A stretch of DNA of 32,000 nucleotides, taken from positions 1 to 32,000 of the forward strand of contig NW_008806296.1 in NCBI RefSeq assembly GCF_000400465.1. The letters run 5' to 3'. Every line of letters starts with the position of its first letter. Positions within the stretch are counted from its first letter, which is position 1. The DNA comes from Wallemia ichthyophaga EXF-994. Taxonomy: Eukaryota; Fungi; Basidiomycota. This document shows, in pieces, positions 1-10,900 of the stretch. The notes beneath the pieces were generated by a model, which saw only the letters and a program-made list of their open reading frames with translations, was not told where the DNA came from and searched no databases. The translations under genes were made by a program, and so were the position numbers.

Positions 1-20
1 CCTAACCTAACCTAACCTAA
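1..20 (+). repeat. Telomeric repeat (CCTAA)4 = TTAGG on the minus strand; left chromosome end
   Basis: Four perfect CCTAA copies from base 1, C-rich strand 5'-terminal as expected for a left telomere, abrupt junction to unique sequence at 21. Confidence 0.85.
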
Positions 21-164
21 TTTTCTACTTTACTACTATGTAGTAAGCGTAAAGTTTTGAAGCAAGCCAAATGACATCATTAATATGACGCAATCTACGC
101 CAGTCTACACTGTGAATACGTTCTCTGCACCAAATACCCAACATAACAAAGCCGGCATACTAAA

Positions 165-1231
165 ATGGGGATCAAATTCAAAGCGTTTAGAGGACAACAC
201 GATGGTACGATCAGAGAGTCCGTTGGTTGTGTAGATGACGTTGGAGACAAGGATGTGCTCATCAAAATGACCCACGCAGGTCTCTGCTTCACAGACACTC
301 ACTACATCGAGACAGGATGCGTATTAAGTCATGAGAATTGCGGAAAGATCGTTGAGACTGGCAGAAAAGTCAGTCATCTGCGAGTTGGAGACACTGTGGG
401 GTTCGGTTTTGTGCACAATGCGTGCGGGAAGACATCGTGCGATGCCTGTTTGCAGGGCAACGACACTCTCTGCAGTGAGGCAAGAGTATACGGTGAAGCT
501 GATCTTGATTGGGGTGGTTTTGGTGAGTATGCCAAGCTAGATGGTGATTTCGTACACAAAATTCCAGATGGCATAGCACCAGAACATGCAGCACCACTAC
601 AATGCGCCGGCGCTACTGTTTTTGCCCCGTTTCTCAAATTCGACATCAAGCCGATTCATCGCGTGGGCGTTATCGGCATTGGTGGTCTCGGACACTTGGC
701 ACTGCAGGTTGCACATAAATGGGGCTGCTCAGTCGCTGCTTTCACTCTGTCAGATAGCAGAAGCGAGGAGTACAAGGCGCTCGGCGCTCACGAGGTCATT
801 GTCACACAGCGCGCGGATGGCAGCTCTTTCGTTCCTCAGGACGAGGAAGACAAGTTCGATTTCATTCTTTCCTCAGCCAGCTCGCACGTGCCGTGGGATG
901 ACTACTTGGACTGTCTCAAACCACGCGGACAGATCATCCCACTCGCCAATTTTTTGGGAAAATTCGAGACGAACAGATACCCGGCCTTGCTCGCTAGAGA
1001 GAATAAAGTGGGCGGTAGTTTGTGTGCAACGAGGTGCGTGTGTTGTACTGATCCTTTCTTCTACTTACCCGCCCAAGATATGAACAAAAGAAGATGCTCC
1101 AATTCTGCGCGAGACATGACATTAAGCCAGCTGTAGAGGTACTTGATCTCACACAGGATAATCTCAACCATGCATTGGAAAGACTGAAAAAGGGCCAAGT
1201 GCGGTATAGATTTGTGCTGAGGCATGTGTAG
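165..1231 (+). CDS. Zinc-binding medium-chain alcohol dehydrogenase (NADP-dependent, cinnamyl-ADH/Adh6-like)
   Basis: Catalytic Zn ligands (CFTD, SHE, LQCAG), four-Cys structural Zn loop, GIGGLG Rossmann motif. Intron 1034-1077 (GTGCGT..AAG) restores C-terminus ...RYEQKKMLQFCARHDIKPAVE...GQVRYRFVLRHV*. Confidence 0.93.
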
Positions 1232-1705
1232 ACGCTTTTGTTACTCAACTGATTAACCCCTCGTTGAACATAGGAGCCAAATACTCCGAATCATATCATG
1301 AATGTTGAGCGAAAGTTAACCATGTCAATACGAAATTCTTACTGTGTTTATCATTAAAGCCGAACTCCACTACAGCGCTTAATGTTAATGGTTATTGTGC
1401 TAAAGACTTTGCTTGGAGTTGCAGACAGCGATGAACTTTACTTCGTGCCAACACAAAGGGCAAAAAGTATCAAATTGTAAACTCTAATAATATGGATGAC
1501 TTCAATTGGCACGTTGGACATGTTTGAATTGCGCCATTTCATATAGTGGTGGTTGAGAATCAAAGCTAGCTTTTCTTAGCAATTGACAAGTTGGATTTGA
1601 TAGAGAGCTTAGAGAAAACCAGCTTAATTTTAATTTATAATGTACTTTATATACCTCTATATCTCTTTATCCCGGGCAGGCAGGTTAGCTTTGAACCAAC
1701 AAACA

Positions 1706-2469
1706 ATGTCACGGGTTAATTTATCGCAAATAACCAGTTTGAATTTCGAAGCAGACGAGTACACGACAGGGCGGCGTCTGGCACCAGTAGCGCAACTGCA
1801 GTGTGACAAGAAGGAGGGAAGGAGTGCATGCGAGCAATACACGCCGGAGAGCATACACTGCGAGAACAGGGGATGGGATGCCTACACGCACGCCGTGCAA
1901 TGGAGCTGCTCTACCACGCTCCCTTCTAATCTCAAGCTGGGGAAGGTGAGGGTGAATTGTGAGCGGTGGGAGGAGAGTGGGCCGGCAAACGAGGTGCTTA
2001 ATGGTGAGTAAGGAGTTGCTTTTCTTATATACTTTCTCACACGGGTGCACAAGGATCATGCGCACTTAAATACACTCTAGTTGATGTGAGCAACAGGAGT
2101 GACGATAAAGGTAGCACATTCTTTGCCGTCATCTTCTTTGCTATCCTCGCCATCATACTCTACAACCTCTTTTGCGGACACAGGAGGGATTCGGCGGGAT
2201 ATTCTACCAGCGGTGATCAACCACCACCCCCTTACACGCCTTATAATTCAAAACAGCCAGATCAGCAAGCTGGACAAAATTGGAGACCGGGCTTCTGGAC
2301 GGGTTTGGGTGTCGGTGGAGCTGGTGCACATCTCTATGACCAGTGGCAGAACCGCGATTCGCATTCACACTCAGAAGACAGCTTCGGACGCCATCATGGA
2401 TCGTCGTCTGCCGGACCTTCCAATACTTACGAGAGCACCACATCTTATGGGGGTACAGACACGCGCTGA
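1706..2469 (+). CDS. SARAF: SARAF/TMEM66-like store-operated calcium entry regulator
   Basis: YTTGRRLAPVAQLQC...CENRG...QWSC...LGKVRVNCE pattern; intron 2004-2053 (GTGAGT..AAG) joins to GSCALKYTL; one TM segment (FFAVIFFAILAIILY), PPPPY and GFWTGLGVGG motifs. Confidence 0.85.
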
Positions 2470-2551
2470 TGAAGGCGTAGATGTTTACGAAATGCTATTA
2501 ATTTGTTGTATATAATGTGATAATGTGATACTTATTGTAATGAATGCTGTT

Positions 2552-4437
2552 TTATGCGCTTGAATCTGTTTGCGCAGTGTTAGTAAGTCCGACAAGCCAT
2601 CACTTAACCTACAATATACGAGAGTACGTTTAATGTATAGGAGCATGTATCCCTGGCTATCAAGGACCGATTGGATAGAAGTTGGTGAGACATCTGCATC
2701 CTCGCACCTGAACCACTTGATTATTTAACGTTAGCAAAAACACCATACTTGGCAACGCTTTACTCACCTGCTCACCGAACCGCGACGCACACAGATAGTG
2801 TCCCGTCTCCATCTCACCGAGGTGGTTGATAACACAGAAAAGGTCATAGAGGTACATCTCGTCTGGCTCGCTACTGTCGTCACTGGTGTATGGACGCATG
2901 TTAAGAGTGAGCGGGAAGCGTACGGGAGCGTCCAACTTTTGCGCCCAGAGACCATGTTCATAGCGTTTAATCTGGAACGCGAGGACAGTTGGGAGTTTTC
3001 TGAATGAGAGCTGCTTAGTGGACGCCTGAGCTGAGCAGCTAGTGCACTTCCAGTCACTGGGTTCTGGGTATGTATAGCGTCTCAGACAATTGTCCAGATT
3101 CTGAGGTGAGATGGAAGGGGGAGTGTGGTTTGCGCTATTTTTACCACTGTTGGTGGTGCCATTTTTGCCATTCTTTGGTCCGTTCGTGGTGCTGCCACTG
3201 CCACCACCTCCATTCGTATCCCTGCTGCTGCCAACATCCAAACTGACATCGAGGAAAGGATCGCTAGTGACGCTGGCGTACCCACACACTCTGCACTTAA
3301 GCTCTGATTGCAGCGTGCCTTGGAAAGTGGTGTGGATGATGCATGAGCAATCGTATGAGTGCGATGTGGAGGAAGTACAGCTGGAATGGATGAGATTGAG
3401 TACTGAAGGGGTGTGTGAGTTGGAAGCATGTAGTCAACGTCATCGAAATTCAACGCACAGGAGATATACGCCTCGTGAGCATCCTGCTGCGCGTAACCAG
3501 CCAGATCACTCGCTCCGGGAGCTGTCCATAGATTGTGCAGAAGCGAGGTTGGGCCTAGGGGAGCTGTATCTGGTTGGTGAACCTGTGAATTGTGTTAGTG
3601 GAGCACATGTCAGACACCGTACACACCTGCGTGAAAAGTTTATCAAATTCGCAGGCAGTGCATTTGTCCCGCGTGCAGAGAAGATGATTATGTTTCTCGC
3701 TAAGGAAGTACGAGCGTAGGAGGGGTGTAGCTATAAACGCCTGTAGAATCACATTGAGGAAGCAAGTTTTGCCAAGATTTCTGAATCCGCGGGGACCTAA
3801 GGAAGGTGAGTGTGTGTCCATCCCTGATAAATCCATACACACGGAGTGATATTGGATTTCCGTAGCGTCCGGGGGCGATAGTAGATACGTCATTTTGGGG
3901 AAGAGGTTTAAACGCGGATCTGGAGTGGCCATTTGCGGCTGTGTGGGGGTTAGAAGGGATTAGTTGGGATAAACCCACGCACCCTTCCGCTTTGTGGATT
4001 TCTCTTCTCGCCTCAGCTTGAGCAATTTGATAACTTTATCGAGGCGTGGGCTGTAGATGTAATCGCAGCAGACGGAGCAAAATACGGAAGCAGAGAGAGT
4101 ATCTATGGCTATAGAGAGTGAGTAAATCAGCGAAAAGGACAGATTACACACCAAAACAGATATTATGATGCTGGTTTGAATGGTTGGACAGTGCAGCGTA
4201 ATGGAAGCAATTTGCGCAAGTGAGGCAGAGTTGCGGTCGTGTCAAGGGGAGGTTAGAAACCTGGCAGAGATTTGACTTTTACGCGGAATCAGCAATCAAG
4301 GTTACAAACACGGAAGACATAGTCCAAACCTTGCTGGAAATGCTACTAGCGTACAAACCCCAATTAACACCAATGGTAAGCTTATGTAGGAAATCTTTGT
4401 TTGGAAGGTGTGCGTCTATATGTTCGCACAGAGCCAT
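2552..4437 (-). CDS. UBP8: Ubiquitin C-terminal hydrolase Ubp8/USP22 (SAGA deubiquitination module), multi-exon
   Basis: N-terminal ZnF-UBP (LCLTC...FCSVCCDYIY), Cys box GFRNLGKTCFLNVILQ, GYAQQDAHE, His box VINHLGEMETGHY, WFRCED; GT-AG introns join the ORF fragments. Last short exon (YSSA*) is less certain. Confidence 0.9.
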
Positions 4438-4510: not shown

Positions 4511-5139
4511 TTAGATGAGCAGCGCTCCAGCTAGAACACCTAAACAAGCCAATAAAAGGGGTAATGTGTGCTTGGTTGCAGCGCTGTCATTGTCCCGTAA
4601 GTAGTCGTCCCTGTAAAATAGAATTTAGTGGGGGGAATAATTGAGTAGAATACAACTCACATGCTCAAAACTGTTGGATTAGCAGGTGCATTTGAGTGTG
4701 TAGAATGGATTCTAACCGATGTGTCTGAATTTGTTAGCCTGTTTCAGCCAATCAAATAAAACGTACCCTGTGAGGGGAATGAGTGGGTGTGAATAGATAC
4801 AGCAGCCACCTACCAATGAACGCGATGGTGAAGAACTACTAGAAGTTGCAGCTGCAGTTGCTGATGCCTGTGTTGACGTTGGACTCAAAGTTGCCCTATA
4901 AAATGAATAAGAGGTGCCTATAATTTCAATTCGACACGCACATAATACTTGTCCTGAAAACCACGTCATCCGCATTGTATCTGTTCACCTTCTTAGTTTG
5001 GTAGCCGTGTGGCACAGAGCACAACCCACGCCTGAGAGACTGCAAGTGTCTGCGATTCGCCTGGTGGCGCAGTTGTGATAATTTCAGCGCATACGCATCC
5101 GATTACCGCTGCCAATATTAGCGCTATTGAGATTTTCAT
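4511..5139 (-). CDS. Small secreted Ser/Thr-rich, probably GPI-anchored cell-surface protein (131 aa, 6 exons), absent from the ORF track
   Basis: Exons 5139-5030, 4980-4942, 4895-4814, 4767, 4724-4661, 4610-4511 splice in frame to MKISIALILAAVIGCVCA-EIITTAPPGESQTLAVSQAYNADDVVFRTSIMATLSPTSTQASATAAATSSSSSPSRSLDTSVRIHSTHSNAPANPTVLSMDDYLRDNDSAATKHTLPLLLACLGVLAGALLI*: signal peptide, S/T-rich body, small residues then a hydrophobic tail. Confidence 0.78.
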
Positions 5140-5313
5140 CGTTTGGGTTGAAAAGGGTAATCACTGCCAATTTAGGGCTATTCGCCGCACGGTCTGAACG
5201 AGACGGACGTAATTAAAAATGTGTTGTAAACACGATAGATGGCTGTCGTTGGTGTTTCATGCGCTGCTCATATCCTTCTTATCCTCCGCCACCTCTCTTC
5301 CTCAAGCACAATC

Positions 5314-6344
5314 ATGGCCAGCCGCTGGGATCAACCTGACAGAGCATCAGCAGCAGGTTAGTTGTATATTCCCGCTTTAAATCACATTTAACTCAAAATT
5401 CAGCTGCTGCTGCTGCTAAACTTTCCTCCCAATACCACGGCCCTAGAGAGACTGACGCGCCTTTCTACACACGCATTGAAGTGAATGACCTCAAGAACAG
5501 ATACACTCTCACTAAATCAGCTGCCCAGCAATCCATCTACAATGAGACTGGTGCGCAGGTTTCCACTAAAGGCCAATGGTACCCTGACAGATCCAAGGCT
5601 ACTCCCGCAGAACCTCCTCTGTACCTCCTCATCGAAGCCCAAACTCAGGACTCGTTTGATATGGCTGTGAATAAAGTCCATGAGCTCAAAGATATGGACA
5701 TGCAGCCACTCGTTGAAGATCGGAATCGCAGGTTCGAGGAGAGAGCCGCGTCGAGGCGTAAATGGGATGAATTCAAGGTCTTCATTAATATGGAACCTCT
5801 ACGTAATTTCAATCTTAGAGCTAAAATTGTCGGTCCAGGTGGTATGTTTGTCAAGTACATACAACAAGAAACCAATACAAAGGTACAAATTAAAGGACTT
5901 GGTAGTGGGTTTTTAGAACAGGACACTGGTCAAGAGAGTAACGACGCGATGCACATCAATGTAACAGGTCCGGATGTACAGCAATTCAGCTACGCCAGGG
6001 AGTTATCTGAGGATCTTATATCTGCTGTCAAAGTGGAATGGGAGAGAGCGCAAGGGATTGTACCGCAAGTCGAGCAGATGGGTTACGATCAGTCGCAGTA
6101 TAGTGATATGCCAGCGATACCTGATCCAAATGACAAAGAGGGAGTTGACAAGTATAACAAGTACTGGACTGATCAGGGCTACGATCTCAATGATGCTGCT
6201 TTCAGGGAGTGGCTGACGGAGTATGAGAAGTCGCAGAAGGAGTATTATGCACAGTACTATGCACAGTATCAGCAGCAGCAGCCAGAGCAGAATCCGCAAG
6301 CAAAGCAGGAATACCACGCAGTGCCACCACCAAATAATTTATGA
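5314..6344 (+). CDS. KHDC4: KH-domain RNA-binding protein, KHDC4/BLOM7-like
   Basis: IEVNDLKNRYTLTK...GAQVSTKGQWYPD...PLYLLI, then FNLRAKIVGPGGMFVKYIQQETNTKVQIKGLGSGFLE; Q/Y-rich tail; intron 5357-5403. Confidence 0.85.
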
Positions 6345-6623
6345 TCTGATTTAATTAATGGGTTTTACATAGACAGAAGACTGCCAGTGTGATTGTGTGA
6401 GGTGTGACTTGGGGAGTTGAAAGGAGAATAAAACCCAGGCAATTAGTACACGCTATAGACATCAGCCAAACACCCTCCCACCTCCCGTAATAAAGCGGCT
6501 GCAAAATTTAAATTTTCGAGGTTCACGAAATCCTTCAATCGATCTTCCTTTCAACTCAGCAGCTGTTAGTCAAAAAATCTAAATCGTAAGAAAAAAACAT
6601 TCTAACGGTTGAATGCAGGCAAA

Positions 6624-7139
6624 ATGGTCAACGTACGCGACGTCTCCGCTCCAAGTTTCATTGAGGCCTACTCTCAACACTTGAAGAGATCAGGAAAGAT
6701 TGAGATTCCAAACTGGGTTGACATTGTCAAGACTGGCTCCCACAAGGAGCTTGCACCATACAACCCAGATTGGTGGGTAGTTTCTTGGTAAAATCTGCTC
6801 AAAACTCATCCTTCACGCTACAGGTACTTCGTCCGCGCTGCTGCAGTCGCCCGCCACATCTACCTCCGTAAATCCGTCGGTGTTGGCTCACTCGTAAAGT
6901 TCCACGGTGGTGCCGTCAACAGAGGCCACCGCCCATACCACCACAGAGACGCTTCTAGAGGCGTTGACCGTAGAGTCGTGCAATCCTTGGAGAAGATTGG
7001 TGTCCTCGAGAAGGCCGTTGACGGTGGCAGAAGAATCTCTCAAGACGGTATGCGTGATCTCGATCGTATCGCCGCTTCTGTCGTCGAAACCGGCAATGAA
7101 GAGGAGTCTGAAGAGGAGGAAGATGACGACGATGAGTAG
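6624..7139 (+). CDS. RPS19: 40S ribosomal protein eS19
   Basis: VRDV...[30 protein letters not shown]...[16 protein letters not shown]...[16 protein letters not shown]; one coding intron (GTGGGT..CAG); acidic tail; probable 5'UTR intron ending at 6618. Confidence 0.97.
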
Positions 7140-7293
7140 ATGCGCTACATACACTCGCTGCTTTTACTTGGGGAGTTGAAAAGTTGAATTTGGTTTTTGT
7201 ACGCTTCTAATTCCTTTAATTTAACTTTTTGATTCTTTAAATAGTTGTTTGTAGTGATTGATAGTGGTTTGTACATCTTTCTACTTGTCTTTC

Positions 7294-10074: not shown

Positions 10075-10900
10075 CTAAACTGTATCATCGTGGAACTGAA
10101 TGGGGTGAGTGGGCCGTGGGGTAAAGTATAACCAAACGTACCTCCCATCGTGTCTAAATGATGGGTAAGTGAGTACATAAGTAAAAGCCAAAGTAGAAAC
10201 CACTACGACCGACCTTCTTTGGATTCTCAGGTGCGCGTGCAACATACCTATCATTGTCCGGCGGAAGTTGCTTAGATTTGCACGAAGTGAGCACTGAATG
10301 AGATGATAAGGAGGGTTGAGTGAATTCGTGGGACATACTCGATTGGATAGTGAGACACACTGCTGACACGCTTTTTTCGTGTGTTAGATACCGACAAGAG
10401 TGCAAGAGCGTATACCCACTTGAGTACAGGACTCCAGCCGTCTGAGAGAATGGATGCACATATCTGAGAATGTGTGTGTAAGCATAAATCAACTCGGATA
10501 ACTCCCCTCGCACATGACCATTTGAGTAGACGTGTGGATGAACAGGTGCCTTGTATGTAGCCCCTTCAAGCTCGCCAACTACGAATTGTACAGCAGGTGA
10601 ATCTATCGGATACTGCCCAGAGAATCTAAACATAAGCGCCAGTTTGTCGTCCTGTAGTGTGATGATAAAGAGTGTAAGAGTGATCGTGCTTCCATCGGAC
10701 CACTACGCACGCTATAAATGCTGTCATAAGCTTCTAGCTCAAATATCCATTTATGAAGGTCATCTGATTGGAGGAGCTGGATGCCTGAAGCTGGTGTTAT
10801 GGGTGCACACCACCAGCAAATCCAACCAACCAGTAGGACAGCCCTTATCATTAAGATCCTTCAATTCCTTTGAAAGTCGTTTCGTTGCTAGGAAGCTCAT
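10075..10900 (-). CDS. UBE2W: Ubiquitin-conjugating enzyme E2, UBE2W-like (8 exons)
   Basis: MSFLATKRLSKELKDL, FRFSGQYPIDSPAVQF, HPHVYSNGHICASIL (catalytic Cys), LPPDNDRYV, PKKTRWEFHDDTV*; seven GT-AG introns. Confidence 0.9.

Follow-up and report, generated by a model that had tools for sequence, protein, structure and literature searches.

The locus analysed here raises the question of whether a single nucleotide can make up a complete internal exon in Wallemia ichthyophaga EXF-994. The window, i.e. the whole stretch of DNA that was analysed, comprises 32,000 nucleotides of contig NW_008806296.1. On its minus strand, the original prediction placed two short introns on either side of one base, the G at position 4767. 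The minus-strand bases and coordinates of TTG, GTAGGT, CACAG, G4767, GTACGT, GCTAAC and TTCAG were each reproduced exactly in the sequence. We conclude that G4767 is very probably a spliced one-base exon in W. ichthyophaga. This reading is the best-supported model, with the arrangement AG/N/GT (slashes mark splice boundaries) kept in seven Wallemia lineages and with an orthologous transcript that carries exactly one G at the corresponding junction.

The base lies within a small gene for a putative surface protein of 131 amino acids that is located between a UCH (ubiquitin-hydrolase) gene and a KH-domain gene, and that has a Ser/Thr-rich middle and a GPI-signal-like tail, as judged by eye (Table 1). 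The termini, also assigned by eye, consist of a signal-peptide-like start (MKISIALILAAVIGCVCA) and an end that reads ...NDSAATKHTLP-LLLACLGVLAGALLI; both are kept in the orthologues. The exon 3 segment has a single open frame that can be read directly off the sequence. Between exons 3 and 5, the window contains two full canonical GT-AG introns of normal length, each with a donor, a branch motif and a YAG acceptor, and exactly one base separates them. The expectation of two normal-sized introns with good donors around the G was confirmed, with the first donor scoring 7.73 bits on the matrix described below. The branch-like CTCAT of the upstream mini-intron is at 4783–4779, where the A at 4780 is 12 nt from the 3′ end of the intron. 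The sequence directly after the acceptor at 4725, at the start of exon 5, is ACACATCG.

Table 1. Features of the gene carrying the one-nucleotide exon, in window coordinates.
Feature	Positions	Strand	Description
Exon 1	5030..5139	(-)	ATG 5139-5137; signal-peptide-like MKISIALILAAVIGCVCA and E(I/V)(I/V)TTAP motif
Intron 1, 49 nt	4981..5029	(-)	GTGGGT...ACTAAG...AACAG
Exon 2, 39 nt	4942..4980	(-)	Encodes YNADDVVF...
Intron 2, 46 nt	4896..4941	(-)	GTGCGT...TTATAG
Exon 3, 82 nt	4814..4895	(-)	Ser/Thr/Ala-rich; last codons TCA TTG; phase 0
Upstream mini-intron, 46 nt	4768..4813	(-)	Donor GTAGGT 4813-4808; acceptor CACAG to 4768
One-nucleotide exon G (very probable)	4767..4767	(-)	First base of codon GAC (Asp)
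Downstream mini-intron, 42 nt	4725..4766	(-)	Donor GTACGT 4766-4761; branch point GCTAAC 4738-4733; acceptor TTCAG to 4725
Exon 5, 64 nt	4661..4724	(-)	Begins AC ACA TCG; last residues ...TVLSM
Last intron, 50 nt	4611..4660	(-)	GTGAGT...ACTAAA...TTACAG
Exon 6	4511..4610	(-)	DDYLRDNDSAATKHTLP, then hydrophobic tail LLLACLGVLAGALLI; stop TAA 4513-4511
Rival donor GTGGCT	4804..4809	(-)	Overlaps +5 to +10 of the real donor GTAGGT; 4.2 bits

The whole gene was assembled from the ATG at 5139 to the TAA at 4513–4511, and every splice variant was translated. Inclusion of G4767 results in a 131-residue ORF (...SRSLDTSV...) that stays open to the hydrophobic C-terminal tail. Skipping of the G, which leaves one 89-nt intron, leads to an early stop, as does retention of either mini-intron. 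Translation of the variants thus bears out two earlier claims, namely that the G is needed to form GAC and to hold the frame to the GPI-like tail, and that early stops follow when it is skipped or when either intron is kept. The frame requirement for the one base also holds in the orthologues; if even one of the four splice sites were lost, the frame would shift and the anchor signal would disappear.

The donor GTGGCT at 4809, which is displaced by 4 nt from the proposed donor (the +4 donor), combined with an 85-nt intron gives a 132-residue ORF (...SRSLVDTSV...). The competing 85-nt model named in the original prediction therefore does exist in frame, but it is not the only competitor: exhaustive enumeration adds a canonical read-through model, an in-frame option with 46 nt of coding sequence followed by a 55-nt intron from 4766 to a second AG, at TTAG (4712). 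The predicted mRNA junction is TCATTG-G-ACACATCG for the one-nucleotide exon and TCATTG-ACACATCG, i.e. TCATTGACACATCG, if the G is skipped. For the +4 donor, it is TCATTGGTAG-ACACATCG, also written TCATTGGTAGACACATCG, with marker reads TCATTGGTAGACAC.

Conservation was assessed in syntenic regions from six further lineages, which were anchored on the KH protein and its cluster members. The seven lineages compared are the window, W. ichthyophaga E3P78 (L016; assembly GCA_004918065.1), L001, W. hederae (L009), W. mellicola (L022) and the AT-rich L010 and L017. An orthologue with the shared N-terminus, MDDY...hydrophobic tail and intron positions is present in 6/6 of the further lineages. The start codon and the E(I/V)(I/V)TTAP motif are common to all orthologues, the position of intron 1 is common to all lineages, and the MDDY...DSAAT...hydrophobic tail encoded by exon 6 is likewise kept. 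The arrangement AG/N/GT with two complete introns, each with its own strong donor, is found in 7/7 Wallemia lineages (Table 2). Conservation of AG/G/GT in sister species, which had been put forward as a check, was thus found in the more general form AG/N/GT: the exon base is G in six lineages and A in E3P78. The completed codon varies between GAC, AAC, GAT, GCT and GCC, which encode Asp, Asn or Ala. Judged from these sequences, the splice structure is conserved and the amino acid is not.

Table 2. Splice junctions around the one-nucleotide exon in seven Wallemia lineages (slashes, splice boundaries; numbers in brackets, mini-intron lengths in nt).
Lineage	Arrangement
Window	TTG/GTAGGT(46)CACAG/G/GTACGT(42)TTCAG/AC
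W. ichthyophaga E3P78 (L016)	As window except ...TTACAG/A/GTACGT
L001	ACG/GTGGGT(50)GACAG/G/GTGCGT(46)CATAG/AC
W. hederae (L009)	ACG/GTGGGT(50)GTTCAG/G/GTGCGT(45)ACGCAG/AT
W. mellicola CBS 633.66 (L022)	ACG/GTGAGT(44)CTACAG/G/GTGTGT(47)TAGCAG/AT
AT-rich Wallemia L010, L017	GCT/GTGAGT or GTAAGT(72/71)TTTAG/G/GTAAGC(67/68)AACAG/CT or CC

The mini-intron halves are 42–50 nt long (67–72 nt in the AT-rich clade), similar to the other introns of the same gene. In the AT-rich clade (L010 5145–5774 and L017 2170–2801, both on the minus strand), intron 2 is absent and all introns are longer (55–72 nt). The intron pair around the single G is kept in this clade, so intron gain or loss spared the one-base exon.

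The persistence of the internal AG/N/GTRNG is not leftover similarity, because the intron interiors of the deep lineages are identical only at the level of shuffled sequence (e.g. 35% versus 36%, and 51% versus 50%). The interior of the downstream mini-intron of the window shares 63–70% identity with those of L001, W. hederae and W. mellicola, compared to 52–54% when shuffled. The bare motif YAGNGTRNGT, with 7 matches in the window versus 3.55 expected, is unremarkable by itself. When the interiors of the composite introns were shuffled, an internal AGNGTRNG with both halves of at least 38 nt arose with p = 5e-5 to 1.2e-2 per lineage. The full two-intron configuration is non-random.

Among the six other YAGNGTRNGT matches in the window, only TAGCGTGCGT at 10705–10714 was decoded; as a candidate micro-exon it was rejected, since it is an ordinary exon end. 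The ubiquitin-conjugating-enzyme gene at window 10080–10900 (minus strand) has several short introns, four of which (46, 59, 50 and 56 nt) were decoded by eye and placed from the conserved HPHVYSNGH/ICASIL core.

The transcript evidence consists of one assembled contig, which derives from a relative of W. mellicola and not from W. ichthyophaga. The protein P0134 (122 residues), from the Logan assembly of run SRR23314750, falls in the same 90% cluster as WALSEDRAFT_70885 of W. mellicola and is encoded on the Logan contig L023 (3,632 nt). The KH, target and UCH genes are all unbroken ORFs on this contig. L023 most likely represents cDNA, since all 15 intron positions of the W. mellicola locus are missing from it. 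Its coding sequence shares 96% identity with W. mellicola CBS 633.66. Spliced alignment of L023 with the W. mellicola genome produced 15 gaps, 14 of which are canonical GT-AG introns of 42–50 nt (mean 45.4 nt, sd 2.65). The fifteenth gap is 91 nt, which is 17 sd off the mean, and consists of 44 and 47 nt around a single G; no GT-AG solution for the 91-nt gap was found at any equivalent shift.

Aligned to the one-nucleotide-exon CDS of W. mellicola, L023 matches without gaps over 369/369 nt, with 15 mismatches. The junction reads ACAAACACG-G-ATACAGCA (ACG-G-ATACAG), encoding ...NTDTAS..., and the +4-donor product ACGGTGAATACA is not what the contig reads. In the mRNA of this W. mellicola-type orthologue, the flanking exons are thus separated by one additional base and no more. 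Minor isoforms spliced at the +4 donor, or lacking the G, may occur. A low-stringency spliced alignment of L023 with the window gave gaps of 36–56 nt in the UCH gene, with ragged boundaries, and is a loose indication.

Over positions 1–3632, the single contig L023 covers three genes in full and in spliced form, together with a portion of a fourth, with genes lying on both strands, and only 55 nt separate the target stop codon from the UCH start codon. Neighbouring transcripts appear to overlap or abut in this compact genome.

In the proposed mechanism, G4767 would be bordered directly on each side by an ordinary GT-AG intron of the U2 type (46 nt and 42 nt, respectively), and removal of both would leave the G to open the Asp codon G/AC. 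Each mini-intron would be recognised by intron definition, the usual mode for short (~45-nt) fungal introns, as suggested by the size range of the local Wallemia introns (42–59 nt). The upstream branch A at 4780 and the acceptor at 4768 lie 14 and 2 nt, respectively, from the second donor at 4766. The introns would be excised one after the other, since complexes assembled on 3′ and 5′ splice sites 1 nt apart would probably clash; either order would fit the sequence, each with normal substrates. Sequential splicing had already been proposed and remains likely on these steric grounds, but the reason originally given, that the context of the second donor is formed by ligation, is weak: positions -3 to -1 read AGG before ligation and TGG after it, which are equally good.

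The arrangement probably persists as a frozen accident. It is unlikely that the one-base exon is instead a splicing switch, in which donor 4813 is joined to acceptor 4725, the G is left out and the reading frame changes. If it were, the GPI signal would be replaced by a short out-of-frame tail (...SLTHRLESILHTQMHLLIQQF, followed by a stop), and an anchored wall protein could alternate, depending on salinity for instance, with a form that is released or degraded. Such a role could explain the genus-wide retention.

Splicing of the weak donor GTGGCT (4809) to TTCAG (4725), with removal of one 85-nt intron, would insert an extra Val (...SLVDTS...) and would make AG-G-GTACGT coincidental; we consider this quite improbable. 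The intron is canonical GT-AG and in frame, and an equivalent in-frame GT exists in every lineage. The presence of this GT is uninformative, because a phase-0 GTNNGT donor followed by a one-nucleotide exon automatically gives an in-frame GT 4 nt downstream, the GT in question being positions +5/+6 of the strong donor. Donor strengths were compared on a matrix built from the 14 introns of the W. mellicola locus that are defined by the transcript contig, a small training set whose RNA-supported donors score 5.6–9.0 bits. Both proposed donors match GTRNG(T/C) in all lineages and also score 5.6–9.0 bits. The +4 hexamers (GTGGCT, GTGGCC, GTTATG, GTGAAG, GTATGC and GTTTTG) are not conserved and score from -6.7 to 4.2 bits, which is below every training donor and, lineage by lineage, below both proposed donors. 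Across the lineages, the 85-nt model also requires an intron of 85–136 nt, about twice the local norm, and a chance origin of the conserved internal AG/N/GTRNG (p ≤ 1e-2 per lineage). The +4 donor is, moreover, unused in the W. mellicola-type transcript.

The W. ichthyophaga locus could also be decaying or unexpressed, or the G could be mostly skipped, such that the exon has no productive role in that species. Neither an annotation nor a W. ichthyophaga transcript-derived protein was found in the collections searched, and 13 of the 14 exonic differences between two strains are nonsynonymous. These differences were obtained by comparing window 4511–5139 (minus strand) with L007 5096–5724, from strains that are 99.35% identical overall. 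The exons contain 14 differences in 396 nt (13 nonsynonymous and 1 synonymous), compared to 1 in 233 nt of introns and 0 in 222 nt of flanks (exons versus the 455 nt of introns and flanks, Fisher p = 2.4e-4). Clustering of substitutions in exons is the opposite of neutral decay. In addition, the ORF and all splice sites are intact in four W. ichthyophaga-type sequences, and the window and L016 encode the same protein sequence in the C-terminal exon (100% identity). This reading as a whole is very unlikely. To judge from the pattern of substitutions, diversifying selection appears to act on the N-terminal half of a protein that is secreted or exposed at the surface.

It is extremely unlikely that the composite is one 88-nt non-canonical intron with a boundary that is off by one base, either TA...AG from 4812 or GT...CA ending at 4726 (TG...AG or GT...CA in W. 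mellicola). The G in the mRNA would in that case be either the first G of the donor or the last G of the acceptor. Where the exon base is G, both models predict the same mRNA, and a naive spliced alignment of L023 with L022 does yield exactly one 91-nt gap. However, this would be both the sole non-canonical and the sole double-length intron among the 15 in the W. mellicola locus, and the genus-wide conservation of an internal acceptor, an internal donor and an upstream branch motif would be left unexplained.

The read-through model, with the 46-nt segment coding (...SLVGGCCIYSHPLIPLTG...) ahead of one intron from GTACGT, is scarcely credible: although it is canonical, keeps the frame open as far as the GPI-like tail of the window product, and is free of in-frame stops over the 46 nt in the window, L016 and W. 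hederae, it is interrupted by stops in four lineages (L001, W. mellicola, L010 and L017), passes over the first AG after the GCTAAC branch point, adds a Cys-rich hydrophobic stretch that has no counterpart in any orthologue, and retains a segment that is removed in the orthologous transcript. As an aside on annotation, this spurious but canonical model (window 4712–4813, minus strand) is one that a gene predictor could wrongly choose.

The one-nucleotide exon, which remains the preferred model, coincides with gaps and errors in existing gene models. Over 17 kb, the window shares 99.3% identity with W. ichthyophaga assembly GCA_004918755.1, and the product of the adjoining KH-domain gene shares 99% identity with a W. 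ichthyophaga protein. The interval that separates UCH from KH is without an annotated gene in W. hederae and in both of the W. ichthyophaga assemblies inspected. The W. mellicola model WALSEDRAFT_70885 (L022 3001–3293) is a 68-residue "partial" model that ends in ...NTV; it reads into the first donor and is truncated exactly at the one-nucleotide-exon junction, and the true product has 122 residues.

This W. mellicola model was the single match when a profile of the seven products was used for a database search. The window product as a protein query returned nothing at E ≤ 0.01 in a protein database of 5.8 billion clusters, and no homologues outside Wallemia were found by protein or profile search of that database. 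No Pfam family was matched by the product, and similarity searches for the W. ichthyophaga product found none. The exact proteins of both W. ichthyophaga models are absent from a collection of 15 billion proteins, and exact look-up of the proteins of both models for six lineages returned entries only for the W. mellicola cluster. A codon-degenerate pattern of exon 1 gave zero matches in JGI metagenome contigs, and a scan of these contigs anchored on the KH protein gave one locus, at 49% identity, that was rejected as unrelated. Three ENA contigs (L004–L006) carry the KH gene and are too short to reach the target gene.

Reconstruction of introns from annotated gene ranges and product lengths gave ambiguous solutions and exposed dubious annotated models, and unsupervised intron calling by ORF continuity proved too noisy to yield an unbiased donor matrix, whether or not a branch site was demanded. 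Among the neighbouring annotations, the NCBI models of W. ichthyophaga (544 residues) and W. hederae (546 residues) merge the KH-domain gene with the downstream gene for ribosomal protein S19e (window about 5240–7200, plus strand; L007 5824–7724; L009 6001–8031), such that one product bears both Pfam domains. The annotations of L016 and W. mellicola have KH and S19e as separate genes, and a distinct S19e ORF was called in several unannotated contigs.

The Wallemia exon joins a known rare class that is represented by Arabidopsis APC11, Fusarium CYP621A and Coprinopsis. Single-nucleotide exons are indeed rare, as the original prediction held, but those in fungi already have precedents (PMC12940212, PMC12230235). 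No earlier report of a one-nucleotide exon in Wallemia was found in the literature. The single-nucleotide internal exon of APC11 in Arabidopsis thaliana was proven by mutagenesis and cDNA sequencing (Guo & Liu 2015; PMC4674806). Its base is an A between introns of 332 and about 89 nt; its authors favour intron definition with successive removal, and their mutants showed the identity of the base to be immaterial (PMC4674806). The two cases share GT-AG flanks, a frame requirement and a miss by annotation, and the G/A variation in Wallemia parallels the APC11 base mutants. In contrast, APC11 is a plant gene with much longer introns, and the Wallemia case is based on comparative evidence and one orthologous transcript contig.

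Closer to the present case, the P450 genes of the CYP621A family in Fusarium contain a one-nucleotide exon that is conserved among orthologues and seen in SRA reads (Nelson & Syed 2026; PMC12940212). Both cases are fungal, with an AGGGT core, a composite of about twice the normal intron length and incorrect automated gene models. The Fusarium exon is from an ascomycete and its base is part of PKG, a motif of the catalytic fold that is strictly conserved, whereas in Wallemia, a basidiomycete of the Wallemiomycetes, the base lies in a fast-evolving Ser/Thr-rich linker and its codon changes. Preservation of a protein motif cannot explain retention in Wallemia, because the completed codon changes in the linker. 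In another class of Basidiomycota, the available text of the long-read annotation of Coprinopsis cinerea describes thirteen 1-nt exons, whose omission leads to premature stops (PMC12230235). These exons were revealed by transcripts, as in Wallemia, and are presented in that text as annotation statistics of one species, without individual conservation analysis (PMC12230235).

Two related arrangements were considered and rejected. Stwintrons, such as those of type [D1,2], consist of two short, touching fungal U2 introns that are removed by consecutive splicing reactions; the internal intron splits a splice signal of the external intron, and the mRNA keeps nothing (PMC5587772, PMC9024468). Here, neither mini-intron splits the signals of the other and one base stays in the mRNA. 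Zero-nucleotide recursive splice sites, for which PMC4674806 cites the established work, have the form AG/GT, retain no base, and subdivide very long introns of Drosophila and vertebrates. Like such ratchet points, the Wallemia site juxtaposes a 3′ and a 5′ splice site that act in successive steps; unlike them, AG/N/GT keeps a coding base, present between AG and GT in all lineages, between two introns of minimal length.

Three features of the Wallemia exon have not previously been reported together: it is conserved throughout a deeply diverged genus whose intron interiors are otherwise saturated with substitutions, its base varies naturally between G and A, and it lies in a linker of low complexity that evolves fast. 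Its abutting introns of minimal length (42–46 nt) offer a compact natural substrate for studying the smallest workable distance from a 3′ to a 5′ splice site and the order of intron removal. The exon has defeated gene prediction: three Wallemia annotations lack the gene, and a fourth has it in truncated form. In Wallemia, a salt-loving extremophile, small secreted and cell-wall proteins may thus be under-counted.
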